Origin: Selaginella moellendorffii
Taxonomy: Eukaryota; Plantae; Lycopodiophyta
Assembly (NCBI RefSeq): GCF_000143415.4
Contig: NW_003314299.1
Coordinates: 420,229 to 484,228 of the forward strand
Length of the DNA: 64,000 nt
Direction: 5' to 3'
The notes under the pieces are model-generated. The model saw only the letters and a program-made list of their open reading frames with translations, was not told the origin of the DNA and made no database searches. Made by a program: the position numbers and the translations under genes. Below are positions 2,448 through 50,351 of this stretch, one piece after another (positions within the stretch are counted from its first letter, which is position 1; every line of letters begins with the position of its first letter).

Positions 2448-2449
2448 CT

Positions 2450-27834: not shown

Positions 27835-28571
27835 GTATATTTGACAAAATGCCATGTTAAAGTTTAATATTGTGGAGTTCACTATTGTATGGATACACAG
27901 GATCAAGAGATATGGACTTTGACACGACGATTTTTCGATAAAATGCCATACCAACATCTAGTTTCTTGGAACACCATGCTTGATGCTTATGCCCAAAACG
28001 GGTATATGGTAGAAGCAAGGGTCATGTTCAATGCAATGGTGGAGAAGGACGTAATTTCTTGGACTAGAATGCTTGCTGCCTATGGTCTTAGTGGCCAGAG
28101 TTCACTTGCAAGAAAAACTTTTGCCCAGATGCCAGGGAAGAATGAAGTTTCTTGGGATGCAATGCTCAGTGCATGTACCCAAGCAGGGGATTCGGTTTCT
28201 GTGTTTGAGTTGTTTCACACTATGTAGATGGCCGGCATTTACAACCAAGTTGGATTTGTCTCCGCTCTCAATGCTCATGGCCAAGTTCGCAGTGTTGCTT
28301 TGTTTCGATGGCTTTTGACTGTGGCATTCAGCCATGTCACCAGCATTACTCCTGCATAATCGATGGCTTGGCAAGAGCTGGTTACATTGACAATGCAAGA
28401 GAACTCATCGGAAACATGCCATTTGTTCCCACTTCTTTGAATTGGCTGTGCCTTTTAGCTGCATGTCGGAGCCTCGAGTGTGGAACCTGCATATCAAAAT
28501 GGGTGTCTGGACTTGCGAGCAGCAGAGCTATGTATCCTCTCCTGGCAAATGTATGGGCTTGGCATTGTTAG
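27835..28571 (+). pseudogene. PPR-B 3' fragment copy
   Basis: Homologous to 22310-23037, with a TAG at 28225 and a deletion. Confidence 0.85.
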
Positions 28572-28729
28572 AATCTAAAGAACAAAAACTGCTGCCTAGA
28601 TTATGTTGTCAAATTGCTCGAGAATTTAAGACTAGAAGTACCAATTGCGTTTCATGCTTGATAAATTCAAATATTGACAAAATGGGAAAAAAACAAATCA
28701 TTTGTCTATATAACACCCAACATTCCCAG

Positions 28730-29200
28730 GATCTGAGCGTGGACCTCCTGGACCAAATCACCAGAGGCTCTGAGAGATCGCGAGCAACTTCAATCAGACA
28801 GATACCTTGCAATACCTAGCGATTGAGGTGTGTGGAAAGTGCACCAGGCGAAAATTGTGTTTGATGATCCGCCTGAGGGAATGTGTTTGATTCCATGTGA
28901 ATGTTCTCAAAACTCTTCATGGATAACTAGAAAACGATCAATGTTTGATGCCTGACGACGATACTTGCTGCCATGATAGGTACTAACAAAGCAAATATTC
29001 CTTTGCGCCACGATGCTCACACGAAGCTCTTCGGAGCGATGGAGATGGAACGCGATGCCCTTGTCATGGCAGCGTGGGGCTGCCTCCGACTCGATCCATC
29101 GCCTTGGACTCCTCCAAATCGTGCGGTGCTTCGGTATCCGACCTGCACCAAACGACGATTAAGTCAATGCAAGTGCTACGTCCATATCACCCATGTTTTG
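28730..29200 (+). pseudogene. Highly decayed third PPR relic (also near 23150-23600, 38110-38600 and 49225-49680)
   Basis: Fragments AIEVCGKC, QAKIVFDD and KLFGAMEMERDA resemble the first motifs of PLS-PPR genes. Confidence 0.45.
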
Positions 29201-29227
29201 TATTACAGATTGGGCTTCACAGGAATC

Positions 29228-30825
29228 TTAGACAAGCACGTTTGATTCCTCTGACAACAGCACGCAATGTAGCTCCGACCTCTCAAACTCCTTGAAGGAT
29301 CGGTCACCAGTGATGTAGAACACAAAGGCAGAGCATGGAGACGTATACCGCAGCGAGTGCTGCCACTAGCCAAGCGAAAAGAAAGCCGTAGCCTGGGTAA
29401 AGCGTCCAGGCCTTCCCGAGTACTGGGAGCGCCATGGCGAAGACCGAGTCGGAGATACCTTCCCTGCCAAAGAAACAGAAGAACATTAGAGAGCTTTGAT
29501 TGATCAAAACTGTCACATCTGTAATCGAATGTCTGGAGATATGGATCTACAACCGCTGAAACGCCTCCAACCAACTAAAGCCATTCTCCACGACACGGAA
29601 AGCATCGGCCTCTTTCGCCCGGGGACCGCTTGCTCCCAAGTCGCGGTTGATATCAATCCTAAAAGCATTCACCAGAAACTTAGAGAACACCATCATAACT
29701 GCGCTCTACCTCTTTTTCCCGGCCTGGCGCATCAGGTCTGGGAACTCGAAATCGTAACAAATAGCTCCTCCAATCCGGCCGAGCTCGGTCTTGATGACAG
29801 GAAGAATGGGATCCCCTGGAGTTCCATACCAATGGAACCAAGTGGGATTTCCTGTAGGTAAATCCAATGGAGCCATCGGGAAGAACGAGGTCGAAATAGT
29901 TCCCGACGCTCGCGTCCTTGTACTCGTAAGTGATGCCGACGTAGGCGCCGTGCTGGAAAGCGATCTGTCCGGCTTTGAATTGGAGAGAATCCCTCTCCTG
30001 TTTGAGGTGGAGTTTCACCGCAGCCTCGGACCAGAGCACCAACCGATCGCCGGCTCGGAGGCGCTGGTTCGTCCGGTTGAGCATCACATCCATGTCCTCG
30101 TAGACGAGGAGCTTGCCCAGGACGCAAGAGACCGGCACTGTTTTCTTCATCGTGAGGGCGATGTCCTTCTGGAAGAAATCGCCCGAGAAGACCGAGACCC
30201 TGGCGCTGCCGTAGAACAAGGTCGAGAGGGCAATGGCTCCAAACGCCAGGGAGTGGCCGCGATGCAGCTGCGTAGCACGCTTCTTGTCGGATTTGTCCAT
30301 CTTGGGAAGAGACTCGTCGAGAACGGTCCTGTCGTGGAGAATCGCCGAGAACCACGCCATGAGGAATGCGATCCCATCCATCCCCCACACGCCGGCGCTC
30401 ATCACCAGGGGCAAGATTGTCACCTGCGACACGGCGGGATGGAGGAGGGCGCCGACGCCGCCGAATCGATTCCACAGGAACCACGCCGTGGTCCAGACCG
30501 ACGCAAATACCAGCGGCTGGGACGTTCTTGCTCGATCAAAACGCTTCCTGTAGCCGATGCTTGCAAGAAATGGGAGGAGAAGAAACACCCACAGCGCCAG
30601 TGCCCAGATTATTCCCACAATTGGCACGCTGCTGGCGGTGGAGTTGTCCGGGCTCACCTTTCCCAGGAAGAATGCCAGGAGAGCAAGAATTGTGCGTAAT
30701 CCCTGATTTGTGGAAGAAATGCAGGAGGAAAAATGGTTGGAGCCAAGAACAAATTGCAACAGATTGGAAACCAGAGAAGAAAGTGCATGCCACCAAGAGA
30801 ATGGCCAGCATTTCACTTTCGTCAT
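29228..30825 (-). pseudogene. Lnt-like N-acyltransferase copy with deletions and frameshifts
   Basis: Closely matches 38640-40395 but frameshifts after HLVP, has a shifted N-terminus, and its second intron donor is mutated from GT to AT. Confidence 0.9.
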
Positions 30826-32276
30826 GTCTCTTGGTGCTTGTTTGAATGTAGGTGGTAATTTATATTTTTATTAAAATGAAAAGAATATATTATAAATATT
30901 CAGGTATATTTTAAAATATACCTTCATCTAGCAGTTTTAATTTTTTCACTCATAAAATTATCAGTGTTTAATACTATATCTTAAACATAGACAAAACCTC
31001 TAAAGTTAACTGAAATCTAGAGAAAAAAAAAATATATATATACTACTTGATGTAATACAAAACTCCTATCCTCTTGTCTATATCTACATCTTCTTTTCCC
31101 ATTTGTTTCTTTTGCATTATAAAATATTAAAACCATGATATAATTATATTTGTTTAAGATGTTACTTAAAGGTCATTAGTGTTTAATACAGTCATAAAGA
31201 TAACTTACTACTACTTAAAGAAGCTTTTGGTTCTTTTGATTCTTGGGCTACAAATTTTTGGATTTTCACTTTGTTTCTACCAAGTGACAAAAGCTATTGA
31301 AAGTAATCTAAAAAAATATTATATTCAAACAAGTCTATAGTTTTTAGAACAATCTAACCATGCTAGTTGCATAAATTTTTTAACTTATTTGTACATTGTA
31401 AACAACTAAAGAGAACGAATTGCATATAGGTTCAAAAATAAAGGGAAAGAACTTATTACACCCTATTTTTCAATTAGTTAAGAGGGATATTTAGGGTTAA
31501 ATATTTTTGGGTTTGAATAATAGTGGGCTAAATGAACTTTTAAGAAGTCTAAATTTTATTGGTTGGCTAAGGGAATTATATTATATATTTGATTAACATC
31601 TAATAAGAGAGTGAGGCTCTCAAAAAAGTCTTGAAGAGTTACTTGAGAGATAATTAAATATAAAAAGAAAATAGTTATAAGTAAAAGTGCACCACCTTTT
31701 TCCAATTTGTTAAAAGTCTTGGAATACTCTAGGCTTGAGAAACAATAAAGTATATATGGAAAAAGCCCATGAATAAAACACTCATTTTTTAATCAGTTAA
31801 AATTGGTTAAAGGTTTTAGGATTGCATTTAATTTTGGAAAGAATTGATCACCAAGATCTCCAAGAATGAGGGAAAGAAGCCAATTACAATAAAGAGGGTG
31901 TTAGAGTAAAAGACACATCACCCTCTACCTCTAGTTGCTTTGTACCCCATTTCCCAATTTCAATATATCCCATGACCTACTTGTGTTAATGGTTTAAGGT
32001 AACTATGATATTTTAAGATATTCTACCATTTAGCAAATAGATTAATTTTGTATTTAAACACTTTTTAGTATATTCTAGATTATTCTACTTTTAATTCGGA
32101 TTGATCAATTAGGTTAATAAATATTACTAAACAAAAATAAAACCATTATTAACAAACTACACATTGTTACAAACAAATTATTCTTCTCATAATGAATTTT
32201 TAATATTATCATTAAATATTATTTAATCTAAGTATGTTCTTACAACAATCTTGAGTTCAATGTTTTGGGTTAGATT

Positions 32277-34049
32277 ATGAACAGAAACTCAAGCATTCAT
32301 TTTATTCAATCCTGCAAAAGCCTTTATGAAGCAAGAGAGATTTACCTGAATCTTAAAAGGAATCATCCACTTGCTAATGATTCCTTCCTCAGCAACAAGC
32401 TCATTGAGATGTTTGGCAAATATGAAAGCCCGCAAGAGGCACGCCAAATCTTTGATACCATCAAACACAAAGACTCCTTTTCGTGGGCTTTCATGTTTCA
32501 AGCTTATGCCCAAAACTCCCATCTTAAACATGCAAGAGAGATCTTCGACAAAATGCCGCAAAAGGATGTCCTTGCATGGACATCCATGCTCTTGGCATAT
32601 GCCCGGAGTGGGCATATTCTCAATGCCCAAAAAACATTTGATGAGATGCCGCAACACAGCCTTCTCTCATGGAATGCATCTTGTCAGTCCACGCACACAG
32701 CTGGGATCTACAATATGCCGAAAGGATTATCTCCGGGATGCCCGAGTATGATCTCGTGTCGTGGAATTCCATTCTTGCGCCCGGAACGGGCATGTAGAGG
32801 GAGCGAAACGTGTTTTCGATTCTATGGAGGCTCGTGACCTTGTATCATGGACGACAATCTTGGTTGCCTTGTCGCAGGGCGGAGATTTGCACGGAGCAAA
32901 ACTTTTGTTTGATGTAATGCCGCAGCACGATCTCGTCGCCTGGACCGCGATGCTTAGCGCGTACGCACTGAACGAGGATGTCGATTCGGCACAGAGGATT
33001 TTCCGCGAGTAGATCTCGTTTCGTGCAACACCGTGATGCGATGCTGCCGTGATGCTAGACAATCAAAGCTTATATTTGACTCCATGTCGCAGAGAGCTCT
33101 CTCGTCGTGGACAACAATGCTCGCTGTTCTTGCCAAGAACAGCCCCGGGGAGGAAACCAAGAGCTTTTTCTATCAAATGCCGGAGCTTGATCTTACTTCC
33201 TGTACGATAATGCTGCTCTCACAACCCTCAGACTTGGATCTTGTGAAGGCCACCTTTGATCAAATGCCGCAGCGAGACCTGTGCTCTTGGAACTCTGTTC
33301 TTTTGGCGTATGCCCAATCAGGGCATTGTGACTTTGCTTTAAGACTCTTTAACGAGATGCCCGAAATGGATATGGTTTCGTGGAACACAATGTTAAATGC
33401 GTTTGTTCTAACTAGCAAACTACGTGAAGCTGCTTTACTCTTTCATAGCATGCTAGAACGCAACGTTGTGACCTGGGATGCTTTGATATCTGCATTTCCC
33501 GAGAAGGCCATATTGTATACGCAAGGAAACTTTTTGATACAGCCCCTGACAGAGACCTAATCTTGTGGAGGCTCCATGATAGCTTCATATGCACAAGTAA
33601 GCACCACTGCCAGCAAGGCCTTTCATCTCTTCAACGAAATGCAGGCCGTCGATTCCCCAAACACATCGTGCTTCGTATCCATCCTGGCCGCAAACAGCCA
33701 CAAAGGCAGCTTCCAAGCGGGAAAGAGCTTCTTCGCTTCCATGGTTGTGGATCACGCCATTGAGCCCACAAGGCAGCACTACAGTTGCATGGTAGATCTC
33801 TTGAGCCGAGCCGGCCACCTTCACGACGCCAAAGATCTAATCTTAAGCATGCCGTTCGTTCCCAGTGCTCTCGACTGGACGTGTCTTCTCGGAGCATGCA
33901 AGAGCCACGAGGATTATAACAATCTTAGACTGGGAGACGATGTAGTGAGATCTGTAATGGACGTAACCGACGCAACTCCCAAGACACCCTATGCTTTACT
34001 GGCAAACGTCTACACAAGCTCCCAAACACAAAATCCACACTATATGTAA
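32277..34049 (+). pseudogene. PPR-A copy 3 with multiple frameshifts and stops
   Basis: Fragments at 32277, 32761, 33033 and 33576 together reproduce the 6068-7726 protein. Confidence 0.9.
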
Positions 34050-34089
34050 AATCTAAGGACTTACTCTCTCCTGTACGCATGAAGTCATT

Positions 34090-34308
34090 TTAATCACCTC
34101 CGCCACCGCCACCTCCTCCGCCACAGCCCCCACCGCCACAGCCTCCGCCACCACCACAGCCTCCTCCACCGTGGCCTCCACCGTGGTCACCACCAGAGCC
34201 TCCACTGTGGCCTCCACCATGGTGGCCACCGTTAAACATTGCTCCCACGAAATCGGAGCGCCTTCTTGGCTTTCGCCTTTTTGGAGATGCAAAGAAACTG
34301 AAACACAT
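34090..34308 (-). CDS. Peptide A copy 3 (72 aa)
   Basis: Intact MCFSFFASPKRRKPRRRSDFVGAMF...GGGGD. Confidence 0.7.
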   Translation of the reverse strand: MCFSFFASPKRRKPRRRSDFVGAMFNGGHHGGGHSGGSGGDHGGGHGGGGCGGGGGCGGGGCGGGGGGGGGD

Positions 34309-34664
34309 TTTGGATTGATTGCTTGCAAGGGGGCATAATCTTCTGCTTGTATTCAAGGCTAGGACGCAATTTAAGACTTTGACCCAGAGGAATCCACGAA
34401 GAAAGCAATGATAGCGCGTGGACCTGGACAAGTTTATGCAATCAGTGCCACTTCGTGACACTTCATCAGAGTGTTCAAGAAACGCAAGACGTCTATCCAA
34501 CCTTTGAGGAATACGTGCATACGATCTCGTCAAATTGCGCGTGAAGGAAGTTGCTTTGCTTGCTCCATATGGTCAGGCCTTGTGGCCCATCAGATGTTCT
34601 CCTGCCTAGTATATAAACGCAAGCCTCATCGCATTGATCATACCTCTATCTTGCGCAATCCAAG

Positions 34665-34856
34665 ATGTGTTTCGGTTTCTCTCAATCCTCTAACAGGCGA
34701 AAGTAGAGGCGAAGGCGCCCGTCTGTAGCAACGGGCGCCTTCGTGAGTGGTGGCGGAGCTTGTGCTGGCACTGGCGGCGGAGGCTGTGGTGGCGGTGGTG
34801 GCGGTGGTGGTGGTGGTGGCTGCGGAGGAGGAGGCGGCGGCGGCGGAGGCTGCTAA
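34665..34856 (+). pseudogene. Peptide B copy 3 with a nonsense codon (CAG to TAG) at codon 14
   Basis: ATGTGTTTCGGT...AGGCGAAAGTAG; the rest matches copy 4. Confidence 0.7.
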
Positions 34857-35197
34857 ATACTCTGTATGAGAAATAGCCATGCATATGAATGTTTGTAAAT
34901 ATGCATATTCCAAAACTTGCTCAAATAATACGTACAGTTTGTTTGTATTGAACTTGTTTGTTTTTTTCCAGCCAAGGATTGAGCTGGCCACGATCTTAGC
35001 ACTGTTTTGGAACTAGTAAGTAGAATCTCGTAGAATCTATTCAGCAATTCTATGTACTTCAGGTACTATAGTGATTCAAGTAAAATCCAAAAAAAAGGGA
35101 AACATCCACTTACAATACAACGTTTTGAGCTCTCTTCTCTTGTCTTCTCTCGAGCAAAAGCTTTGATTCTTCTAGCTCTCTCTCGCCTCCTGTTTTC

Positions 35198-36693
35198 TTA
35201 CGATTCGCGTCGGGTTCTCCTTTGGCGGGCGCCCTCGCCTTCCTTCTCAATCTCGTTGCCAGCCGCGTCGTCCTCCGCCTTGTCCTTGGAATCGTCCGGG
35301 CAGGAGATGTCTTCCTTCTTGGGCTTCTCTACGGTCACCTGCGCAAGACAAACAACCATGAGAATCCAAAACTCGCGCAACGGTATTGCTAATTGTACCT
35401 TTGTCTTCTTGGGGGGCGATTTCTTGCCACCAAAAAGAATCTTAAACAGCGTGACCACCAACACGAGCGGATCAAAACTATGGCGCTCAAAGAAATGGTT
35501 GGGAACTTCTCGGCCTTCTCGAGAAGATCCTGTGTGTCACAAACGAAAAGAAAGTTAGAATACGAGACAAAGTCCATGCTCATGTGTTTTACTTACAAGA
35601 ATCTTTTCCTTCTGTGGGGATGTCGGCAACCTTGCGCAGGTACTCAAACATCTTTGCCTGAAAAGATTCAAGGTCGTCACACACACACACAAGAAAAAAA
35701 CAAAAGACAGACAAAAGAAGACAAAGGAAAAGTACCTGGATGCCGTCAGGACTCGGAGTCGCTTCTTCAATTTTTTGCTTCTCCTTCTCAGCCTTGTACT
35801 TGGGCTTCCATTTCGTCTCCCTGTACTCTGCTGCCACAGCCTCGTCGGTCGCCACCAGGATGTTGTCAAAAAGAATGCCGTCCTGCATCGTCCAGATCTC
35901 GATCCCTATCGCCGAGATCGGCTCTAGATCCGGCCTGTCCAACTCGAAGTACTCCGGGTTCGGTATTTGCTTCGGAGCCCAGATCCCCTTGTAAGCCAGG
36001 TTGTCGATCATCGGAGGATACCACTTCCCCTTGTAGTCCGGGTTCCTCTTCATGGGCCTCTTCCATTCTCCACACCCAGACGCTTCCTCACACTTTGGGT
36101 TGCTGATCTTCGGGGGCTCCCACTCGCCATCCTCCTCGTCGTCCCAGTCCGCGGGCTTGCTAGCTTCCGGATCGTCAACCTCGTCCGTGTCCAGCCAGTC
36201 ATCGGGCTTGACCGCCTCCGCGTCCTCGATCTCCAGTGGAGCGTCCTCGTCCCAATCGTCGGGCTTGGTCGCTTCCGGATCGGGGATCTTCGCCCGCTCG
36301 TCCCAGTCCTGGGGCTTCTTGTCGTCGGGATCGGGGATGGTCTTGGGCGGGATCACGGCCGGCTCGAAGTCGCTCGAGAGGAGGTCGACGCTCTTCTCCT
36401 CCTTGCCGTCGACGAGGATCTTGAGCGTGTTGTTCGGGTAGATCACTGCTGCTGTGTAGAGGTGAGAGAGCTTGTCAGCCACTGGCGATGGCGGGTACTT
36501 GAGGTGATGCTCGATGTGCTTGTCGGATTTGGGGCCCTTGTGCTTGTAGATGAAGTGCACCTTGTTGATGGTGCTACATTTGTCCAGCCCAAACATGATT
36601 GAGTAGGGGGATTCGTTGCTAAAATTGCCGGGCGTCCATTGCAGGAGAAGGAACTTGAGATAGGCGATGCCACACTCTAATCCCTTCTGGAAT
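35198..36693 (-). pseudogene. CNX: Calnexin homologue copy 3, 5'-truncated with 3' frameshifts
   Basis: Homology begins at FQKGLECGIAYLKF. The 335-aa ORF carries the P-domain, and there is an 11-bp deletion near 35616. Confidence 0.9.
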
Positions 36694-37218
36694 TATAGAG
36701 ATTGGGTTTAAACCTTAGTTAAATACAGAATAAGTGGGAGTTAAATTATGCTTTAAGTTAGTTAACCATGCTTAACTTACCCATTATTTTTATTATACAT
36801 TTGGAATTCATCAAAAACTCAAAAGCTCAAGGGTGGTTATGTGGTGAAGAACCTTAAGAGAATATTAGATTTTGTATTTTCACACTAGATTATAACATTG
36901 GTATTAGAGCCTAATTTAATTCTCATGGCTAACAAATATAAAAGGGAAACGAAGCTTAGTAAACCTTAAGAAAAGTACCATAATGACCAGAGGATAGTTT
37001 AAATATGATTGTAGATAATAATTCCTGAAGGATTGTTAAGCACCAAATTAAGGTAATAAAATAGAAAAAAGGCTTATAAACAAAACCCCCCTTTGTAAAA
37101 GAATGCATGCTTTAGGATTTTACTTTAGTCCCAAATATTAGACTTTAAGAAAATCACAAAAACTTATTAAATATAAAATGACACTAGATTGCAAATTTAG
37201 ATGCAAGAATAACAAAAC

Positions 37219-37956
37219 GTATATTTGACAAAATGATATGTTAAAGTTTAGTATTGTGGAGTTCACTATTGTATGTCAGACAGGATCAAGAGACACGACG
37301 ATTTTTCGATAAAATGCCATACCAACAGCTAGTTTCTTGGAACACCATGCTTGATGCTTATGCCCAAAACGGGTATATGGTAGAAGCAAGGGTCATGTTC
37401 AATGCAATGGTGGAGAAGGACGTAATTTCTTGGACTAGAATGCTTGCTGCCTATGGCCTTAGTGGCCAGAGTTCACTTGCAAGAAAAACTTTTGCCCAGA
37501 TGCCAGGGAAGAATGAAGTTTCTTGGGATGCAATGCTCAGTGCATGTACCCAAGCAGGGGATTCGGTTTCTGTGTTTAAGTTGTTTCACACTATGCAGAT
37601 GGCCCGGCATTTACAACCAAGTTGGATTTGTCTCCGCTCTCAATGCTCACGGCCAAGTTGGCAGTGTTAAATGTGCTAGAAGTTGCTTTGTTTCGATGGC
37701 TTTTGACTGTGGCATTCAGCCATGTCACCAGCATTACTCCTGCATAATCGATGGCTTGGCAAGAGCTGGTTACATTGACAATGCAAGAGAACTCATCGGA
37801 AACATGCCATTTGTTCCCACTTCTTTGGATTGGCTGTGCCTTTTAGCTGCATGTCGGAGCCTCGAGTGTGGAACCTGCGTATCAAAATGTGTGTCTGGAA
37901 TTGTGAGCAGCAGAGCTATGTATCCTCTCCTGGCAAATGTATGGGCTTGGCATTGA
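37219..37956 (+). pseudogene. PPR-B 3' fragment copy, frameshifted
   Basis: ORFs 37254 and 37444 are joined by a 1-nt insertion near 37604. Confidence 0.85.
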
Positions 37957-38639
37957 TAGAATCTAAGGAAGAAATAAACTGCTGCCTGGATTATGTTGTC
38001 AAATTGCTCGAGAATTTGAGACTAGAAGTACCAATTGCGTTTCATGCTTAATAATGACAAAATGGGAAAAATACAAATCATTTGTCTATATAACACCCAT
38101 CATTCCCAGGATGTGAGCGTGGACCTCCTGGACCAAATCACCAGAGGCTCTGAGAGATCGTGAGCAACTTCAATCAGACAGATACCTTGCAATACCTAGC
38201 GATTGAGGTGTGTGGAAAGTGCAGCAGGCGAAAATTGTGTTTGATGATCCGCCTGAGGGAATGTGTTTGATTCTATGCGAATGTTCTCAAAACTCTTCAT
38301 GGAAAACTAGAAAACGATCAATGTTTAATGCCTGAGGGCGATACTTGCTGCCATGATAGGTACTAACAAAGCAAATATTCCATTGCCCCACGATGCTCAA
38401 ACGTCGGAGCGATGGAGATGGAACGCGATGCCTTCGTCATGGCAGCGTGGGGCTGCCTTCTTTGCAATCGATACTCCAGCTGACTCGATCCAACGCCTTA
38501 GAATCCTCCAAATCATGCGGTGCTTCGGTATCCGGCCTAGTGTCGCTGCACCAAACGACGATTAAGTCAATGCAAATGCTACATCCATATCACCCATGTT
38601 TTGTATACACTTCCTTACAGATTGGGCTTCACAGGAATC

Positions 38640-40395
38640 TTAGACAAGCACGCTTGATTCCTCTGGCAACAGCACGCAACGTAGCTCCGACCTCTCAAAC
38701 TCCTTGAAGGATCGGTCACCAGTGATGTAGAACACAAAGGCGGGAGGGGACTTGTCAAGGATGTATGTCACTGCTCCAAGAGGGAGGCAGAGCATGGAGA
38801 CGTGTACCGCAGCGAGTGCTGCCACTAGCCAAGCGAAAAGAAAGCCATAGCTTGGGTAAAGCGTCCAGGCCTTCCCGAGTACTGGGAGCGCCATGGCGAA
38901 GACCGAGTCGGAGATACCTTCCCTGCCAAAGAAACAGAAGAATATTAGAGAGCTTTGATTGATCAAAACTGTCACACCTGTAATCGAATGTCTGGAGATA
39001 TGGATCTACAACCGCTGAAACGCCTCCCGTGGAGCATCGAAACCAACTAAAGCCATTCTCCACGACACGGAAAGCATCGGCCTCTTTCGTCCAGGGACCA
39101 GTTGGTCCCCAAGTCGCGGCTGGTTGGAGCATGATATCAATCCTAAACACATTCACCAGAAACTTAGAGAAGACCATCATAACTGCGCTCTACCTCTTTT
39201 TCCCGGCCTGGCGCATCAGGTCTGGAAACTCGAAATCGTAACAAATAGCTCCTCCAATCCGGCCGAGCTCGGTCTTGATGACAGGAAGAATGGGATCCCC
39301 TGGAGTTCCATACCACTCCACGAATGGAACCAAGTGGGCTTTCCTGTAGCTAAATCCAATGGAGCCATCGGGAAGAACGAGGTCGAAATAGTTCCCGACT
39401 CTTCCAGTGCTCGCGTCCTTGTACTCGTAAGTGATGCCAACGTAGGCGCCGTGCTGGAAAGCGATCTGTCCGGCTTTGAATTGGAGAGAATCCCTCTCCT
39501 GTTTGAGGTCGAGTTTCACCGCAGCCTCGGACCAGAGCACCAATCGATCGCCGGCTCGGAGGCGCTGGCTCGTCCTGTTGAGCATCACATCCATGTCCTC
39601 GTAGAAGAGGAGCTTGCCCAGGACGCAAGAGTCCGGCACTGTTTTCTTCATCGTGAGGGCGATGTCCTTCTGGAAGAAATTCCCCGAGAAAATGGAGACC
39701 CTGGCGCTTCCGTAGAACAAGATCGAGAGAGCAATGGCTCCAAACACCAGGGAGTGGCCGCGATGCAGCTGCATAGCACGCTTCTTGTCGGATTTCTCCA
39801 TCTTGGAAAGATTCTCGTTGAGAACGGCCCTGTCGTGGAGAATCGCCGAGAACCACGCCATGAGGAATGCGATCCCATCGATCCCCCACACTCCGGCGCT
39901 CATCACCAGCGGCAAGATTGTAACCTGGGAAACGGCGGGATGGAGGAAGGAGCCGACGCCGCCGAATCGATTCCACAACAACCACGCCGTGCTCCAGATC
40001 GACGCGAATACCAGCGGCTGGGACGTTCTTGCTCGATCAAAACGCTTCCTGTAGCCGATGCTTGCAAGAAATGGGAGGAGAAGAAACATCCACAGCACCA
40101 GTGCCCAGATTATTCCCACAATTGGCACGCTGCTGGCCTTGGAGTTGTCCGGGCTCACCTTTCCCGGGAAGAATGCCAAGAATGCCAGGCTCGCGGCGGT
40201 GGTCTGGAGGAGGAGCGCCAGGAGGATTGTGAGCGCCGCGGAGCGCCATGAGCAAGAATTGTGCGTAATCCCTGATTTGTGGAAGAAATGCAGGAGGAAA
40301 AATGGTTGGAGCCAAGAACAAATTGCAACAGATTGGAAACCAGAGAAGAAAGTGCACGCCACCGAGAGAATGGCCAACACTGCCACCTTCTTCAT
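38640..40395 (-). CDS. Apolipoprotein N-acyltransferase (Lnt)-like membrane carbon-nitrogen hydrolase; three exons (40395-39194, 39142-38978, 38922-38640), 549 aa
   Basis: About six N-terminal hydrophobic helices, then LVLWSEAA (Glu), YRKAHLVPFVE (Lys), GAICYDFEFP (Cys), FRVVENG...STGGVSAVVDP, TLYPSYG and a C-terminal TM. Removing GT-AG introns of 51 and 55 nt gives a 1650-nt open frame. Confidence 0.85.
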
Positions 40396-41626
40396 GTCTC
40401 TTGGTGCTTGTTTGAATGTAGGTGGTAATTTATATTCTTATTATATTCATAAAAAATTAAAATATTTATAAGGTGAAACGAAAATACTATAAATATTTAG
40501 GGAATATACCTTAATCTAGCCGTTTAAATTTTTTCACTCAAATCAGTGTTTAATACTATATCTTAAATAGAACAACCGTCTAAAGTTAACTAAAATCTCT
40601 CAAAGGAAAACAAATTGTACTATTTGACTTTTTTGTAATACAAGACTCCTATCCACTTGCCTATATTTACATCTTCTTTTCCACTTGTATTTTTTGGATT
40701 ACAAAATGTTAAAACCATAAAATAATTATATTTGTTTAAGCTGCCACTTAGAGGTCATTAATGTTTGATATAGCCATAGAGATAACTCACTATCATTTAA
40801 AGAACTTTTTTTGATTCTTGGACTACAAATCTTTGAATTTTTGTTTTGTTCCCATTAAATTGCAAAAGTTATTGGAAGCAATCTAAAAAAATATGATATT
40901 CAAACAGGGTATTATTCCTAGAATAATCTAACCACACTAGTTGCATAATTGTTTTAACTTATTTGTAGATTGTAAGTAATAAAAAAATGATTTACATAAA
41001 ATTTAAAATATATAAAAAAAGAATCAATTATACTCTATTTTTTAATCAGTTAAGAATTTTGGGATATTTGGGATTAAATATTCTCATGTTTGAATAATAA
41101 TGGGTTAGATAACTTCCTAGAAATTTAAACTATATTGGTTGGTTAGGAGAATCATATTATATGTTTAATTAACATCTAGTAAAAGAGTGGCATTCTCAGG
41201 AGAGTGCTATTTAAAAAAATAATTAAATATAAAAGGAAAAAGTTTATAAATAAAAATGCACATCTTTTTCCAATTAGTTAAAGATTTCGAGATATTATAG
41301 TGAAATATAGAAAGAAAGAGCATATGAATAAAACATAATTGATTAAGGGTATTAGGATATTGAGTGTTAGGATAACCACCTTTACCACTAACTTTGATAT
41401 TTTAAAATATTCTACCATTTAATAATTAAATTTGTTTTGTATTTAAACACTATTTTGGTATATTCTGGTTTATTCTACGATTGATCAATTAGGTTAATAA
41501 ATAATACTAAACAGTGTTACAAACTAATTATTCTTCTCATATAAAGTTTTTATTATTATCATTAAATATTCTTTAATCTAGGCACGTTCTTACAACAATC
41601 TTGAGTCCAATATTTTGGGTTGGACT

Positions 41627-43417
41627 ATGAAGAGGAACTCTAACATTCATTTTATTCAATCCTGCAAAAGCCTTTATGAAGCAAGAGAGATTTACTTGAA
41701 TCTTCAAAGGAATCATCCACTTGCTGATGATTCCTTCCTCAGCAACAAGCTCATTGAGATGTTTGGCAAATATGGAAGCCCACAAGAGGCACGCCAAATC
41801 TTTGATACCATCAAACACAAAGATTCCTTTTCGTGGGCTTTCATGTTTCAAGCTTATGCCCAAAACTCCCATCTTAAACATGCAAAAGAGATCTTCGACA
41901 AAATGCCGCAAAAGGATGTCTTTGCATGGACATCCATGCTCTTGGCATATGCCCGAACTGGGCATGTTCTCAATGCCCAAAAAACATTTGATGAGATGCC
42001 GCAACACAGCCTTCTCTCATGGAACGCAATCCTGTGAGTCCACGCACATGGCTGGGATCTAAAAAATGCCCAGAGGATTATCTCCGGGATGCCCGAGTAT
42101 GATCTCGTGTCTTGGAATTCCATTCCTGCGGCATATGCCTGGAACGGGCATGTAGAGGGATCGAAACGTGTTTTCTATTCAATGGAGGCTCGTGACCTTG
42201 TGTCATGGACGACAATCTTGGTTGCCTTGTCGCAGGGCGGAGATTTGCACGGAGCAAAGCTTTTGTTTGATGTAATGCCGCAGCACGATCTCGTCGCCTG
42301 GACCGCGATGCTTAGCGCGTACGCACTGAACGAGGATGTCGATTCGGCACAAAGGATTTTCCGCGAGATGCCTGAGATAGATCTCGTTTCGTGCAACACC
42401 GTGATGCGATGCTGCCGTGATGCTAGACAATCAAATCTTATATTTGACTCCATGCCGCAGAGAGCTCTCTCGTCGTGGACAACAATGCTCGCTGTTCTTG
42501 CCAAGAACAGCCCCGGGGAGGAAACCAAGAGCTTTTTCTATCAAATGCCGGAGCTTGATCTTACTTCCTGTACGATAATGCTGCTCTCACAACCCTCAGA
42601 CTTGGAGCCTGTGAAGGCCACCTTTGATCAAAAGCCGCAGCGAGACCTGTGCTCTTGGAACTCTGTTCTGTCGGTGTATGCCCAATCAGGGCATTGTGAC
42701 TTTGCTCTTAGACTCTTTAACAAGATGCCCGAAATGGATATGGTTTCGTGGAACACAATGTTAAATGCGTTTGTTCTAACTAGCAAACTACGTGAAGCTG
42801 CTTTACTCTTTCATAGCATGCTAGAACGCAACCTTGTGACCTGGGATGCTTTGATATCTGCATTTTCCCGAGAAGGCCATATTGTATACGCAAGGAAACT
42901 TTTTGATACAGCCCCTGACAGAGACCAAATCTTGTGGAGCTCCATGATAGCTTCATATGCACAAGTAAGCACCACTGCCAGCAAGGCCTTTCATCTCTTC
43001 AACGAAATGCAGGCCGTCGATTCCCCAAACACATCGTGCTTCGCATCCATCCTGGCCGCAAACAGCCACAAAGGCAGCTTTCAAGCGGGAAAGAGCTTCT
43101 TCGCTTCCATGGTTGTGGATCACGCCATTGAGCCCACAAGGCAGCACTACAGTTGCATGGTAGATCTCTTGAGCCGAGCCGGCCACCTTCACGACGCCAA
43201 AGATCTAATCTTAAGCATGCCGTTCGTTCCCAGTGCTCTCGAGTGGACGTGCCTTCTCGGAGCATGCAAGAGCCACGAGGATTATAACAGTCTTAGACTG
43301 GGAGACGATGTAGTGAGATCTGTAATGAACGTAACCGACGCAACTCCCAAGACACCCTATGCTTTACTAGCAAACGTCTACACAAGCTCCCAAACAAAAA
43401 ATCCACACTATATGTAA
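41627..43417 (+). pseudogene. PPR-A copy 4, full length with one in-frame nonsense codon (TCA to TGA at 42035)
   Basis: ORFs 41615-42037 and 42089-43417 are in the same frame and match copy 1. Confidence 0.85.
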
Positions 43418-43457
43418 AATCTAAGGACTTACTCTCTCCTGTACACATGAAGTCATT

Positions 43458-43667
43458 TTAATCACCTCCGCCACCGCCACCTCCTCCGCCACAGCCCCCA
43501 CCGCCACAGCCTCCGCCACCACCACAGCCTCCTCCACCGTGGCCTCCACCGTGGTCACCACCAGAGCCTCCACTGTGGTGGTGGCCACCGCTAAACATTG
43601 CTCCCACGAAATCGGATCGCCTTCTTGGCTTTCGCCTTTTTGGAGATGGAAAGAAACTGAAACACAT
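43458..43667 (-). CDS. Peptide A copy 4 (69 aa)
   Basis: Intact MCFSFFPSPKRRKPRRRS...GGGGD. Confidence 0.7.
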   Translation of the reverse strand: MCFSFFPSPKRRKPRRRSDFVGAMFSGGHHHSGGSGGDHGGGHGGGGCGGGGGCGGGGCGGGGGGGGGD

Positions 43668-44034
43668 TTTGGATTGATTGCTTGCAAGGGGGCATAATCT
43701 TCTGCTTGTATACAAGGCTAGAAGGCAATGTGAGACTTTGACTCAGAGGAAGCCACGAAGAAAGCAATGATAGCGCGTGGACCTGGAGAAGTTTATGCAA
43801 TCAGTGCCACGTCGTGACACTTCATCAGAGTGTTCAAGAAACGCAAGACGTAACACTACAAACGTGCATTTGTCTATCCAATCTTTGAAGAATACGTGCA
43901 TAAAATCTCGTCAAATTGCGCGTGAAGGAAGTTGCTTTGCTTGCTCCATATGGGGCCAATCAGATGTTCTCCTGCCTACTATATAAGCGCAAGCCTCCTC
44001 GCATCAATCATACCTTTATCTTGCGCAATCCAAG

Positions 44035-44223
44035 ATGTGTTTCGGTTTCTCTCAATCCTCTAACAGGCGAAAGCAGAGGCGAAGGCGCCCGTCTGCAGCA
44101 ACGGGCGCCTTCGTGAGTGGTGGCGGAGCTTGTGCTGGCACTGGCGGCGGAGGCTGTGGTGGCGGTGGCGGCGGTGGTGGTGGTGGTGGCTGCGGAGGAG
44201 GCGGCGGCGGCGGAGGCTGCTAA
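44035..44223 (+). CDS. Peptide B copy 4 (62 aa)
   Basis: Intact MCFGFSQSSNRRKQRRRR...GGGGC. Confidence 0.7.
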   Translation: MCFGFSQSSNRRKQRRRRPSAATGAFVSGGGACAGTGGGGCGGGGGGGGGGGCGGGGGGGGC

Positions 44224-45351
44224 ATACTCTGTATGAGAAATAGATATGAATGTTTGTAAATATGCATAATCTCAAACTTCCTCAAATAATACGTACAATT
44301 TGTTTGTTTTTTTTACAGTCAAGGATTGAGCTGGCCACGATCTTAGCACTGTTTTGGAACTAGTAAGTAGAATCTCGTAGAATCTATTCAGCAATTCTAT
44401 GTACTTCAGGTACTATAGTGATTCATGTAAAATCCAAAAAAAAGGGAAACATCTACAATACAACGTTTTGAGCGCTCTTCTCTTGTCTTCTCTCGAGTAA
44501 AAGCTTTGATTCTTCTAGCTCTCTCTTGCCTCCTGTTTTCTTACGATTCGCGTCGGGTTCTCCTTTGACGGGCGCCCTCGCCTTCCTTCTCAATCTCGTT
44601 GCCACCCGCGTCGTCCTCCGCCTTGTCCTTGGAATCGTCCGGGTTGGAGATGTCTTCCTTCTTGGACTTCTCTACAGTCACCTGAACCATGAGAATCCAA
44701 AACTAGCGCAACTCTATTGCTAATTGTACCTTCGTCTTGTTGGGGGGCGATTTCTTGCCACCAAAAAGAATCTTAAACAGCGTGACCACCAAGATGAGCG
44801 GGATCAAAGCTATGGCGCTCAAAGAAATGGTTGGGAACTTCTCGGCCTTCTCCAGAAGATCCTGTGTGTCACAAACGAAAAGAAAGTAAGAATACGAGAC
44901 AAAGTCCATGCTCATGTGTTTTACTTACAAGAATCTTTTCCTTCTGTGACGCCAAAGTCGGGATGTCGGCAACCTTGCGCAGGTACTCAAACATCTTTGC
45001 CTGAAAAGATTCAAGGTCGTCACACACACACACAAGAAAGAAAACAAAAGACAGACAAAAGAAGACAAAGGAAAAGTACCTGGATGCCGTCAGGATTCGG
45101 AGTCGCTTCTTCAATTTTTTGCTTCTCCCTCTCAGCCTCGTACTTGGGCTTCCATTTCGTCTCCCTGTACTCTGCTGCCACAGCCTCGTCGGTCGCCACC
45201 AGGATGTTGTCAAAAAGAATGCCGTCCTGCATCGTCCAGATCTCGATCCCTATCGCCGAGATCGGCTCTAGATCCGGCCTGTCCAACTCGAAGTACTCCG
45301 GGTTCGGTATTTGCTTCGGAGCCCAGATCCCCTTGTAAGCCGGGTTGTCGA

Positions 45352-46818
45352 TCACTTCGGAGGATACCACTTCCCCTTGTAGTCCGGGTTCCTCTTCATG
45401 GGCCTCTTCCATTCTCCACACCCAGACGCTTCCTCACACTTTGGGTTGCTGATCTTCGGGGGCTCCCACTCGCCATCCTCTTCGTCGTCCCAGTTCGCGG
45501 GCTTGCTAGCTTCCGGATCGTCAACCTCGTCCGGCTCGTTGTCGTTTCCTAGCACACAAGCCTCACAAAATTCAAGCTTGCCTGTAAACTCGAATTCTTG
45601 TGCATGTGCTTGATCTCTGGACACTGCTTTGAGGGCGTCTTCATGCACATGGCCTAGACGCTCATGCCACAACTGGAGATTACTCGCTCGAGTTGAGAGC
45701 GCTCGATCTGGCTGCTTATCTGGAACAACCATGGTGGCGTCAAGTTTATAAAGTCCAGAATAGCGTTGTCCATAAGCCACTGCTTGATCTGTCTTCTCGT
45801 CTCGCATAATAGCCTGCTTGGCATTAAAAATAAAATAGAAACCGTTGTCAGAAGCTGCACCGATTGAGAAAAGATGATACGCCAAGCCTGGAACAAAATA
45901 CATGTTCCTGATATCTCGTAGCTCTCCTGAGGCCAGCTTTACTTGAACTGTGCCCACTGCTACAACTGAAAGAAGACTCTTGTCTCCTAAACCAACCTGC
46001 CTGCCTGTAGAAATTTTCCTGAGGTTCAGAAAAGCTTCTTGCCTGCCTGTCATGTGCATATTTGCTGCTGTGTCCAGCCAGATCACGTCTTGATCCTGCT
46101 GCTGAACAAACACAGGTTCTGGAATAGCTCTTACCATAAGAGCTCTTGACTGGTTTGTATAGCCAGTCCTGGCGTTCTTTCTCCCCAAACCTCGAGGACG
46201 CCCTGCTAACCTGTCTCGGCATTCTCTGGCGTAGTGTCCAACCCGCTTACAATAATTGCACTCACCTTTACGCTCGCGTGAGTTGCTGTCTCCAACATTG
46301 CTAGCCCTGAAACTGCTCGCAGTGTTGCTCGCACCAGCCTTGAAACTGCTAGCGCTGCCTCCTTTACCTGGAGAATTCTTTGTTTGCTTTGAGTTGACAA
46401 ACAAAGCTGTGGTTGTGGTTGTATCTGCGGGTGTCTGGTCTTCGGCTGGTTCTTCTTCATTGATAAGAGCTGCTTGCATTTCAATGAAGGTTTTCGTTGA
46501 GTTCTTGAGCATAGTCTTCAATGATTTGAATTCTGGGCGAACCAAAGCATTGAGAAGAACTGCTCGCTTATCATTCTCGGTGACTGCTTCACCTAGACTT
46601 GACAGTTGGGAGAGCACCGACTTCAGCCTTCCTAGAAAAGCTGCTGGAGTCTCGTCCGCTGCCATTTTTAAGCCAAAAAGTTTAGACTTTAACTCAACCT
46701 TTGAAATCTCTGCGCTCGCTTGGTTCCCAAATACGTTCTTCAAGGCTGTCCAGTTCTCTTCTGCGGTCTTCGTGATATCCAGGTGGTGGTGGTGCAATTT
46801 GCCCAGGCCAATCCCCAT
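45352..46818 (-). CDS. Chimeric ORF: Copia Gag, protease and integrase N-terminus fused in frame to about 60 aa of calnexin P-domain
   Basis: 488-aa ORF ...CEACVLGN|[26 protein letters not shown].... The frame stays open upstream to about 46995, but the likely native ATG is out of frame. Confidence 0.55.
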
Positions 46819-47318
46819 GGTGGAGACTGCCTTATCGTTTCTGACCTGCCATTCGTCTTCATCGCTTGCCGCTGACTTCGGCTCTGTTCCTTGGACAATT
46901 CTGAGACAGTTGTCCCGGAGAAAGAGGAACGAAATTTCTTTCGCCCAATTCTCAAAATCTGTGCCCGTGAATAGAGGGATCGGTATTAGTTGTGGTCATT
47001 TCTTCTACAATTTCCAGCACGCTCCACTTTTCTACAGCACGGATTTTTCCCTTCCTCTTCTTCTGCTGCAGTCGAGCAGTCACGCGATCTAGAGTCGCGT
47101 AGCCTTGCTGCTCGTTGCGTGGTCTTGTTTTGCCCATGAGATCATCGTTTGCTCCGATACCATGATAGTTTTCTAGTTAAACGACATACTCTGTTTCCCC
47201 TAACCTACTACCTTTTCATTTTCTCCATGTAAATATATACAAGTCTTGTGTCCGCTCATTTCAGCGTCCACATAAATCTCTTGCCACCTTGGATTAGACT
47301 CCAGGCTGGCTATCTACA
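45544..47318 (-). mobile_element. 3'-truncated Ty1/Copia element: 156-bp 5' LTR, tRNA-iMet PBS, gag, protease and start of integrase
   Basis: LTR TGTAGATA...AACTATCA (47318-47163), PBS TGGTATCGGAGC (47162-47151), zinc knuckle [14 protein letters not shown], protease [10 protein letters not shown], and LWHERLGH...CEACVLG (pre-integrase and integrase zinc finger). Confidence 0.95.
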
Positions 47319-48310
47319 CAGCCAGTCATCGGGCTTGACCGCCTCCGCGTCCTCGATCTCCAGTGGAGCGTCCTCGTCCCAATTCTCGGGCTTGGTCGCT
47401 TCCGGATCGGGGATCTTCGCCCGATCGTCCCAGTCCTGGGGCTTCTTGTCGTCGGGATCGGAGATGGTCTTGGGCGGATCACGGCCGGCTCAAAGTCGCT
47501 CGAGAGGAGGTCGACGCTCTTCTCCTCCTTGCCGTCGACGAGGATCTTGAGCGTGTTGTTCGGGTAGATCACTGCCGTGTAGACGTGAGAGAGCTTGTCA
47601 GCCACTGGCGGTACTTGAGGTGATGCTTGATGTGCTTGTCGGATTTGGGGCCCTTGTGCTTGTAGATGAATTGCACCTTGTTGGTGTTTCCACATTTGTC
47701 TGGCCCAAACATGATTGAGTAGGGGGATTCATTACTGAAATTGCCGGGCGTCCATTGCAAGAGAAGGAACTTGAGATAGGCGATGCCACACTCTAATCCC
47801 TTCTGGAATTATAAAGATTAGGTTTAAACCTTAGTCAAACACAGAATAAGGGAGTTAAATTATGCTTTAAGTTAGTCATCCATGTTTAGCTTACCCAATA
47901 TCTTTATTATATTTTTGGAATTCATCAAAAACTAAAAAACTCAAAAGTAGTTTTATGGTGAAAAACCTTAAGAGAATATTAGATTTTGTATTTTCACATC
48001 AGATTATAACATTGGTATTGGAGCCTAATTTAATTCTCATGGCTGACAAATATGGAAGGAAAACCAAGGTTATGGTGACTAGAGGATAACTTAAATATGA
48101 TTGTAGATGATCATTCCTAAAGGATTGTTAAGCACCAAATTAAGGTAATAGAATAGAAAAAAGGCTTGTAATCAAAACCCTCCTTTGTAAAAAAAATGCA
48201 TCCTTTAGGATTTTACTTTAGTCCCAAAAATTAATTTTTAAAACAATCACAAAAACTTACTAAATATAAAATGACACTAGATTGCAAATTTAGATGCAAG
48301 AATAACAAAG

Positions 48311-49064
48311 TGTATATTTGACAAAATGATATGTTAAAGTTTAGTACTGTGGAGTCCACTATTGTATGTCTACACAGGATCAAGAGATATGGACTTTGAC
48401 ACGACGATTTTTCGATAAAATGCCATACCAACAGCTAGTTTCTTGGAACACCATGCTTGATGCTTATGCCCAAAACGGGTATATGGTAGAAGCAAGGGTC
48501 ATGTTCAATGCAATGGTGGAGAAGGACGTAATTTCTTGGACTAGAATGCTTGCTGCCTATGGCCTTAGTGGCCAGAGTTCACTTGCAAGAAAAACTTTTG
48601 CCCAGATGCCAGGGAAGAATGAAGTTTCTTGGGATGCAATGCTCAGTGCATGTACCCAAGCAGAGGATTCGGTTTCTGTGTTTAAGATGTTTCACACTAT
48701 GCAGATGGCCGGCATTTACAACCAAGTTGGATTTGTCTCCGCCCTCAATGCTCACGGCCAAGTTGGCAGTGTTAAATGTGCTAGAAGTTGCTTTGTTTCG
48801 ATGGCTTTTGACTGTGGCATTCAGCCATGTCACCAGCATTACTCCAGCATAATCGATGGCTTGGCAAGAGCTGGTTACATTGACAATGCAAGAGAACTCA
48901 TCGGAAACATGACATTTGTTCCCACTTCTTTGAATTGGCTGTGCCTTTTAGCTGCATGTCAGAGCCTCGAGTGTGGAACCTGCATATCAAAATGGGTGTC
49001 TGGACTTGCGAGCAGCAGAGCTATGTATCCTCTCCTGGCAAATGTATGGGCTTGGCATTGTTAG
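48311..49064 (+). pseudogene. PPR-B 3' fragment copy (open 232-aa frame, 5'-truncated)
   Basis: ORF 48366-49064 has PPR and E motifs and starts at the same breakpoint as the other truncated copies. Confidence 0.8.
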
Positions 49065-49702
49065 AATCTAAGGGGAAAAAAACTGCTGCCTAGATTATGT
49101 TGTCAAATTGCTCAAGAATTTAAGACTAGAAGTACCAATTGCGTTTCATGCTTGATAATTTCAAATATTGACAAAATGGGAAAAAAACTAAAAATCATTT
49201 GTCTATATAACACCCAACATTCCCAGGATCTGAGGGTGGACCTCCTGGACCAAAGAGGCTCTGAGAGATCGCGAGCAACTTCAATCAGACAGATACCTTG
49301 CAATACCTAGCGATTGAGGTGTGTGGAAAGTGCAGCAGGCGAAAATTGTGTTTGATGATCCGCCTGAGGGAATGTGTTTGATTCTATGTGAATGTTCTCA
49401 AAACTCTTCATGGAAAACTAGAAAAGGATCAATGTTTGATGCCTGACGACGATACTTGCTGCCATGATAGGTACTAACAAAGCAAATATTCCTTTGTGCC
49501 ATGATGCTCACACGAAGCTCTTCAGANNNNNNNNNNNNNNNNNNNNNNNNNNNNNNNNNNNNNNNNNNNNNNNNNNNNNNNNNNNNNNNNNNNNNNNNNN
49601 NNNNNNNNNNNNNNNNNNNNNNNNNNNNNNNNNNNNNNNNCCTTCGGGTGCTATGTCCATATCACCCATGTTTTGTATTACAGATTGGGCTTTACAGGAA
49701 TC

Positions 49703-50351
49703 TTAGACAAGCACTCTTGATTCCTCTGGCAACAGCACGCAATGTAGCTCCGACCTCTCAAACTCCTTGAAGGATTGGTCACCAGTGATGTACAAAGGCG
49801 GGAGGGGACTTGTCAAGGATGTATGTCACTGCTCCAAGAGGGAGGCAGAGCATGGAGACGTGTACTGCAGCAAGTGCTGCCACTAGCCAAGCGAAAAGAA
49901 AGCCATAGCCTGGGTAAAGCGTCCAGGCTTTCCTGAGTACTGGGAGGACCATGGTGAAGACCGAGTCGGAGATACCTTCCCTGCCAAAGAAACAGAAGAA
50001 TATTAGAGAGCTTTGATTGATCAAAACTGTCACACCTGTAATCGAATGTCTGGAGATATGGATCTACAACCGCTGAAATGCCTCCCGTGGAGCATTGAAA
50101 CCAACTAAAGCCATTCTCCACGACACGGAAAGCATCAGCATCCTTTGCCCGGGGACCGCTTGCTCCCCAAGTCGCGGTTGGTTGGAGCATGATACCAATC
50201 CTAAAAGCATTCACCAGAAACTTAGAGAACACCATCATAACTGTGCTCTACCTCTTTTTCCCAGCCTGGCGCATCAGGTCTGGGAACTCGAAATCGTAAC
50301 AATTAGCTCCTCCAATCCAGCCGAGCTCGGTTTTGATGATAGGAAGAATGG
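49703..50351 (-). pseudogene. Lnt-like copy 4, 3' part, split by the LTR nest
   Basis: Matches 38640-39295 and is interrupted at TSD AATGG. Confidence 0.9.

Follow-up and report, generated by a model that had tools for sequence, protein, structure and literature searches.

An intron-containing Lnt-like gene of Selaginella moellendorffii in an ancient eukaryotic family

The gene and its splicing

The window analyzed here is a 64,000-nucleotide (nt) stretch of the genome of the lycophyte Selaginella moellendorffii, and at positions 38640-40395, on the minus strand, lies a gene for a 549-residue membrane protein that resembles bacterial lipoprotein N-acyltransferase (Lnt). The gene sits in a tandem repeat together with pentatricopeptide repeat (PPR) genes, calreticulin-family genes and small peptide open reading frames (ORFs), all of which are collected in Table 1. 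Three minus-strand ORF pieces (40395-39190, 39180-38755 and 38975-38640) fuse cleanly after the removal of two introns, and the spliced coding sequence is 1650 nt long, that is, 549 codons and a stop. The first-pass annotation, made from the letters alone, had placed two GT-AG introns here that give a 549-residue protein; its coordinates and splice sites are right, and the product is 100% identical over 549 residues to XP_024539573.1, the "uncharacterized protein LOC112349408" of S. moellendorffii. The NCBI annotation thus has, independently, identical splice junctions. Very short introns are usual in the genome of this species. A 375-residue ORF on the plus strand (39124-40251) runs antisense to exon 1 and most likely exists only because the coding strand is rich in GC.

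RNA sequencing (RNA-seq) reads and Logan contigs were mapped at a likeness of at least 98%. A Logan contig from one run contains a joint that omits exactly the 51 nt of intron 1, with the ends CT..AC on the plus strand, and in the same run loose contig ends at 39193 and 38977 pass directly into the opening letters of the following exon. Both exon junctions are therefore present in spliced nucleic acid, which bears out the predicted splicing in the contigs of this one run, the depth of raw reads being low.

We considered whether the locus could stem from contamination or faulty annotation or be a dead gene, as would fit the low expression and the several neighboring copies that are pseudogenes. 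However, spliceosomal introns, plant genes on its flanks and a paralogous set of 11 or more gene models spread over four scaffolds speak against this, as do the intact ORF, a ratio of nonsynonymous to synonymous substitution (dN/dS) of ∼0.3 and the spliced contigs. For 38640-40395 the idea is already contradicted, and we give it next to no chance. The introns and plant neighbors had been held against contamination before, and that argument stands: the introns are spliceosomal, and the neighbors include PPR and calreticulin-family genes. We regard it as very probable that the gene is real and vertically inherited, and as likely that the fuller description holds, in which 38640-40395 is a real, spliced and functional gene, LOC112349408, of an ancient eukaryotic Lnt-like family.

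Fold, active site and predicted membrane orientation

The protein carries the motifs WSE (residues 288-290), YRKAHLVPFVE (350-360), ICYD (384-387), RVVENG (426-431), GVSAVVDP (441-448) and TLYPSYG (476-482). From its motifs the first-pass annotation had read the full Lnt architecture, with several transmembrane (TM) helices at the N-terminus, a nitrilase-fold triad and a final TM helix; every motif that it quoted was found, and the structural model agrees. In the AlphaFold2 model (predicted local distance difference test, pLDDT, 89.9; predicted template modeling score, pTM, 0.90), eight TM helices are present and the nitrilase-fold domain lies between TM7 and TM8, as in the Lnt of Escherichia coli and Pseudomonas aeruginosa (PDB 5N6H, 5N6M and 8B0K; TIGR00546). 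The 24 best matches of the model in a Foldseek search of the PDB are all Lnt, over the full length. The model superposes along its entire length on the Lnt of both E. coli and P. aeruginosa; with VIA-align, its residues 1-503 fall on residues 9-508 of E. coli Lnt (Z 28.7, root-mean-square deviation 3.3 Å, 458 residues), so that the comparison with E. coli Lnt that had been proposed for this protein yields a match from end to end, and the best soluble amidases reach Z 23-24 over residues ∼250-490 only. In the ESM Atlas, template modeling scores of 0.80/0.86 connect the protein to a bacterial cluster with the domains LNT_N and CN_hydrolase.

Sequence profiles point the same way in part. Exon 1 alone, which holds the TM domain and two-thirds of the catalytic domain, was used for the Pfam and NCBIfam scores; it passes for CN_hydrolase (PF00795; 36.8 bits, gathering threshold 23.2), and its best NCBIfam match is TIGR00546 (lnt; 1.4e-16, model positions 22-278), over both the TM and the catalytic parts. 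A 55-sequence family profile, four of whose members were bacterial, ranks Lnt first in the PDB and at full length (P. aeruginosa, 2e-30; E. coli, ∼1e-23). Taken with the model, the predicted structure is a full-length Lnt fold, and we treat structure as decisive over the less favorable sequence scores given below. The soluble plant enzymes of the nitrilase superfamily (N-carbamoylputrescine amidohydrolase, PDB 5H8I; Nit2/omega-amidase) share the alpha-beta-beta-alpha fold, the triad and a C-[WFY]-D motif with the Selaginella protein; unlike it, they have no membrane domain and match residues ∼250-490 only.

Lnt has an eight-helix membrane domain with cytoplasmic termini and a periplasmic nitrilase-like domain, and its triad Glu267/Lys335/Cys387 is accompanied by an invariant Glu343 (PMC5500888). 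In the Selaginella protein the triad corresponds to Glu290 and Lys352, which are invariant in 75 aligned sequences, and to Cys385, which is kept in all but one of them. The counterpart of Glu343 is Glu360: in both proteins it stands eight residues after the Lys, and in the hidden Markov model (HMM) alignment it pairs with the Glu of the PFGE motif of P. aeruginosa Lnt. It is invariant in one family alignment, its column having been gapped by MAFFT in the 75-sequence alignment. The Tyr that follows the catalytic Cys (Tyr388 in E. coli, Tyr386 here) is Tyr or Phe across the family.

Two loops rich in Lys and Arg, at residues 114-125 (+5) and 194-212 (+6), lie on the opposite side from the catalytic domain. 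The positive-inside rule and the Lnt structures lead us to infer that both termini are cytosolic and that the catalytic domain faces the lumen or the cell exterior, a predicted topology like that of Lnt; the protein would then be an N-in/C-in protein of the secretory pathway or the plasma membrane. An N-x-T sequon at N273 is present in all embryophyte members and, more broadly, in 14 of 35 eukaryotic sequences versus 3 of 40 prokaryotic ones.

Descent of the family and its possible function

An exhaustive phmmer search with the paralogue P0001, which is 95% identical to the window protein, returned 3393 relatives at E ≤ 1e-3. Names were put on 30 proteins by cluster look-ups, many clade members being left without a label, and every top match within this labelled subset is eukaryotic. 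Mosses and liverworts are represented by Sphagnum (four species) and Calypogeia, streptophyte algae by Klebsormidium, Spirogloea and Closterium (two strains), chlorophytes by Volvox, fungi by Mortierella, Dichotomocladium, Basidiobolus and Ambispora, and other eukaryotes by Balamuthia, Paulinella and MMETSP protist transcripts. These "CN hydrolase domain-containing" membrane proteins fall in the same clade as the Selaginella protein, with identities of 36-38% for Sphagnum (BLASTP) and 25-42% for the others (alignment); unlike them, Selaginella has at least 11 paralogous models and very short introns, and the Sphagnum protein has a long insert between TM6 and TM7 that is absent in Selaginella. 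A metagenome contig with one family member has eukaryotic and green-lineage neighbors (UQ_con, ELP6 and CCB1). No animal homologue and no seed-plant homologue occurs among the labelled matches; as these are only a subset, loss in seed plants is likely rather than proven. We note that the Spirogloea model carries extra ornithine/aspartate carbamoyltransferase domains and is probably a fused gene model, and that the Klebsormidium protein bears the name "Fibrillarin and related nucleolar RNA-binding proteins" despite being an Lnt-like CN hydrolase.

A scan of bacterial and archaeal genomes gave 161 relatives at 24-31% identity over the full length, from many phyla (Chloroflexota, Actinomycetota, Acidobacteriota, Bacteroidota, Verrucomicrobiota, Spirochaetota, and Asgard and Methanosarcinales archaea). 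These proteins, named "apolipoprotein N-acyltransferase" or "nitrilase-related CN hydrolase family" and composed of LNT_N and CN_hydrolase, share with the Selaginella protein the motifs D[IVL][ML]L[QL]P[SA][WA][TD]W and C[FY]Dx[DE]F[PN], including the invariant Asp after Cys-Tyr/Phe; their genes, in contrast, are intronless. Lnt-like genes with the shared motifs are present in Lokiarchaeum ossiferum, in three Heimdallarchaeota bins and in ANME-2/Methanosarcinales archaea. Archaea are not known to use Lnt, and these organisms are not known to make Lnt-type triacylated lipoproteins.

The main tree was inferred with IQ-TREE under LG+C20 with posterior mean site frequencies (PMSF) from 75 rows, rooted on E. 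coli Lnt, with three canonical Lnt sequences sampled; supports are given as ultrafast bootstrap/Shimodaira-Hasegawa-like approximate likelihood ratio test (SH-aLRT). The three canonical Lnt sequences are separated from all others at 100/99. The sampled prokaryotic Lnt-like sequences form a single clade (96/77) that is the sister, not the parent, of a single eukaryotic clade (99/94). Within the latter, streptophytes are grouped at 100/99, streptophytes with the clade that contains Volvox and the alga contig at 95/83, Klebsormidium with embryophytes at 76/87, and embryophytes at 76/87. The Zygnematophyceae branch first, then Klebsormidium and then the embryophytes, which is broadly the expected order, with moderate support at the embryophyte nodes. 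A FastTree analysis of 187 rows agrees, with each of the 80 prokaryote loci placed outside the eukaryote clade. We also considered, and rejected, an Asgard origin of the eukaryotic sequences: those from Loki and Heimdall lie in the prokaryote clade alongside Spirochaetota and Chloroflexota, not beside the eukaryotes.

Both Selaginella introns (codons 400 and 455, phase 2) recur at the identical codon and phase in Klebsormidium, Sphagnum and Calypogeia. The Calypogeia fissa gene has just these two introns, and they account for two of the three introns in Klebsormidium nitens and two of the four in Sphagnum jensenii. The Volvox introns are apparently not at the Selaginella positions, though the gene region contains 706 N and positions there are inexact. 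It follows from the shared positions that the gene and its introns were already present in an early streptophyte and were passed on by vertical descent, and these introns are evidence independent of the tree and stronger than it. The family is thus an ancient eukaryotic one that descended vertically through streptophyte algae, bryophytes and lycophytes.

This result bears directly on a recent horizontal transfer from bacteria to Selaginella, which the first-pass annotation had offered as one of two possibilities. Such an architecture is known elsewhere from bacteria, the labelled matches include no seed-plant protein, and the coding GC of 55% exceeds the window mean of 43%, all of which would suit a transfer. 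However, the nearest relatives are those of Sphagnum, Calypogeia, Klebsormidium, Spirogloea and Closterium, followed by Volvox and other eukaryotes, and the eukaryote clade, the streptophyte clade within it and the two intron positions and phases common across streptophytes already contradict it; we hold it to be extremely improbable. The other possibility offered, patchy retention, is the correct one. Vertical inheritance within an already characterised nitrilase subfamily had been named as what would undo the idea of an unusual gene; inheritance is indeed vertical across green plants, and the subfamily is not a characterised one.

A further possibility is that the protein is a true Lnt orthologue that triacylates bacterial-type lipoproteins, for instance in an organelle envelope. 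The full-length structural match and the conserved catalytic residues are in keeping with this. Against it, the protein stands outside the canonical Lnt branch (100/99) and under the equivalog cut-off, and TM1 is preceded by no N-terminal extension that could serve as a transit peptide; moreover, the family extends to fungi and amoebae, organisms without plastids, and its related prokaryotic members include archaea. We consider such an orthologue very unlikely. The Selaginella protein further differs from Lnt in being only 15-17% identical to it, in a 45-residue C-terminal tail and in being encoded by a eukaryotic gene with introns.

Several observations weigh against our preferred account of a functional gene with Lnt-like properties. 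Exon 1 scores 60.7 with TIGR00546, where the equivalog cut-off is 132.9, and 10.4 with LNT_N (PF20154), where the cut-off is 27.1; of the two domain searches that had been suggested for this protein, the one with CN_hydrolase therefore passes and the one with LNT_N does not. A single-sequence phmmer search of the PDB returned soluble nitrilases only and no Lnt chain, Lnt being reached there only by way of profiles or structure, and with a eukaryote-only profile Lnt comes first at 2.7e-13 with a soluble enzyme nearly equal to it at 5e-13. Glu389 of E. coli Lnt is replaced by Asp387, Asp being invariant throughout the Lnt-like group, and Trp237 has no aligned counterpart; mutagenesis of E. coli Lnt reportedly found the Cys-Tyr-Glu motif (Y388, E389) and W237 to be essential. 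The loop that follows the PF.E motif is much shorter than that of P. aeruginosa Lnt, which may mean a different substrate portal. Expression is low: raw RNA-seq from ∼12% of each of two runs gave 11 and 29 reads at the mapping threshold, and these show fixed differences at six sites, so that their source may be an allele or a near paralogue. A dN/dS of 0.27-0.38 among three intact paralogues indicates moderate purifying selection and no stronger constraint, and many paralogues are decaying. Both the mechanism and the orientation are argued by analogy with Lnt, and we found no description of eukaryotic Lnt-like membrane proteins in the open-access literature. With its sub-threshold scores, its Cys-Tyr-Asp motif and its position outside the canonical branch, the 549-residue protein is not a canonical Lnt, and the label "bacterial-type Lnt" in the first-pass annotation was too strong. 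The gene has been annotated before, just as "uncharacterized"; what it represents is a eukaryotic family with the Lnt fold that departs from canonical Lnt in several defining features.

With its triad intact, the additional Glu in place and the membrane domain preserved, the protein points to Lnt-like chemistry. Cys385 would form a thioester with a fatty acyl chain drawn from a membrane lipid, and the resulting acyl-enzyme would hand this chain to the amine of a second molecule, the membrane-bound acceptor; like Lnt, it would work by ping-pong N-acyl transfer. Judged by analogy, thioester acyl-enzyme chemistry on a lipid has a somewhat better than even chance of being correct, and net N-acyl transfer rather than hydrolysis falls slightly short of even. 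The acceptor is probably not a bacterial-type diacylglyceryl-Cys lipoprotein. In ten loci of the prokaryotic Lnt-like genes, Asgard archaea included, no recurring gene partner was found, and the neighbors are regulators, hydrolases, a major facilitator superfamily (MFS) transporter and methyltransferases.

The main rival on mechanism is a hydrolase, that is, a membrane lipid amidase or phospholipase that gives the acyl-thioester to water or cleaves an N-acyl lipid. In its C-[FY]-D motif and its short loops the protein is like the soluble amidases of the superfamily, which nearly match the Lnt scores with the eukaryote-only profile and reach their Z of 23-24 on the catalytic domain alone, and the lack of W237 and the exchange of E389 for Asp fit as well. 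On the other side, the Glu at +8 from the Lys is conserved as in Lnt, and the entire Lnt membrane domain is preserved together with its geometry; in Lnt that domain brings two lipidated substrates to the site. On this evidence we think a hydrolase unlikely, albeit a rival to be taken seriously. Returning to acyl transfer, its broadest form is possible but doubtful: eukaryotes would hold an old exoplasmic acyl-transfer system homologous to Lnt, possibly as old as the last eukaryotic common ancestor (LECA), that N-acylates the N-terminus of a membrane-anchored protein or an amino-lipid head group and survives in green algae, bryophytes, lycophytes, early-diverging fungi, amoebae and some protists.

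Lnt is taken to be exclusively bacterial and is viewed as a target for antibiotics, and an intron-bearing relative with an intact active site occurs from charophyte algae to lycophytes and also in fungi and amoebae. Such a conserved relative would imply that lipids or proteins undergo an unrecognized acylation at eukaryotic membranes, on their lumenal or extracellular side. The family offers an experimental handle in its catalytic Cys and in culturable relatives such as Volvox and Mortierella. With horizontal transfer refuted, there is a solid family whose function is open to test, and the case cautions that a bacterial-looking gene in a plant need not mean horizontal transfer.

The tandem repeat and its other genes

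Comparison of the window with itself reveals three tandem units of ∼9.4 kb (22300..50350) and a partial unit at 6.0-11.3 kb, 90-94% identical. Each unit consists of a PPR gene, a head-to-head pair of peptide ORFs (Met-Cys-Phe, MCF; polybasic; Gly-Cys), a calreticulin-family gene, a PPR remnant and an Lnt-like gene.

Table 1. Features of the Lnt-like gene and of the surrounding repeat, in window coordinates
Feature	Position	Strand	Remarks
Exon 1	39194..40395	-	Codons 1-400 and 2 nt; TM1-TM7 (residues 1-236, ∼40395-39688) and first two-thirds of the nitrilase-fold domain
Catalytic codons in exon 1	Glu290, 39528-39526; Lys352, 39342-39340; Glu360, 39317-39315; Cys385, 39243-39241	-	
Intron 1	39143..39193	-	51 nt, GT..AG, phase 2, after codon 400
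Exon 2	38978..39142	-	Residues 401-455; part of the nitrilase-fold domain with QP..TWG and RVVENG...GVSAVVDP
Intron 2	38923..38977	-	55 nt, GT..AG, phase 2, after codon 455
Exon 3	38640..38922	-	Residues 456-549 and stop; end of catalytic domain, TM8 (residues 484-501), cytosolic tail modeled with low confidence
Tandem units	∼22.3-31.7, 32.1-41.3, 41.5-50.35 kb		
Decayed full-length paralogue	29204..30850	-	Eight deletions relative to the intact copy (1, 68, 9, 8, 11, 1, 13 and 47 nt), seven within the coding region
3' paralogue fragment	49706..50349	-	Residues 369-549; cut at ∼50351, where a repeat starts
5' paralogue fragment	2016..2448	+	Residues 1-145; inverted orientation
Internal fragment	63736..63948	-	Residues ∼302-369, beside a repeat; upstream part may extend past the window end
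Calreticulin-family copies	26475-27356, 35589-36596, 45352-46818	-	One per tandem unit
PPR genes and PPR remnant	6068-7726, 42089-43417, 37444-37956	+	
MCF peptide ORFs	7767-7967, 24662-24967, 34090-34308, 43458-43667	-	
MCF peptide ORFs	8335-8523, 25335-25562, 44035-44223	+	

The gene at 38640-40395 is the sole intact Lnt-like copy in the window, accompanied by one decayed copy and three fragments. The first-pass annotation had counted four copies or fragments and a short 3' remnant; the amplification is as it described, and the piece at the end of the window is internal rather than a 3' remnant. The ORF of the decayed paralogue (29710-30825, minus strand, 373 residues) is listed in RefSeq as the protein-coding gene LOC112349345; its product has a frame-shifted N-terminus with TM1-2 scrambled and stops before the catalytic Cys. 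Across the Selaginella genome both tandem and dispersed duplications have enlarged the family, several copies of which are in decay, and this locus exemplifies recent tandem amplification and decay. The PPR genes of the repeat unit confirm the plant context. The calreticulin-family ORF at 45352-46818 is fused to copia-type gag/pre-integrase domains, which points to a retrotransposon insertion there.

The seven MCF ORFs, six of them in head-to-head pairs, start with Met-Cys-Phe and continue with a polybasic run and a Cys-studded, Gly-rich tail, one type containing His. One could imagine a peptide-lipidation module in which the enzyme N-acylates the N-terminal Cys of these co-amplified peptides, a few kb away: the ORFs lie within the same ∼9.4 kb units as the Lnt-like copies, and removal of the initiator Met would leave an N-terminal Cys, the residue type acylated by Lnt. 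However, the PPR and calreticulin genes were duplicated along with the unit, and co-amplification of peptides and enzyme is therefore not independent evidence. In addition, two other Selaginella paralogues and the Sphagnum gene have no MCF ORF closer than 10 kb, and these loci are homologous to the window unit in the enzyme gene alone or in that gene and the PPR remnant. The peptides are also without a signal peptide, and the catalytic domain is predicted to be exoplasmic. Such a module strikes us as highly unlikely.

Outside the tandem units, the regions 12970-20250 and 50350-63740 consist of direct and inverted repeat blocks, 77-99.7% identical, which truncate two of the Lnt-like copies and are probably the remains of retrotransposons. 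Runs of N occupy positions 5914-6013, 49527-49640, 55159-55258 and 55987-56086 of the window.

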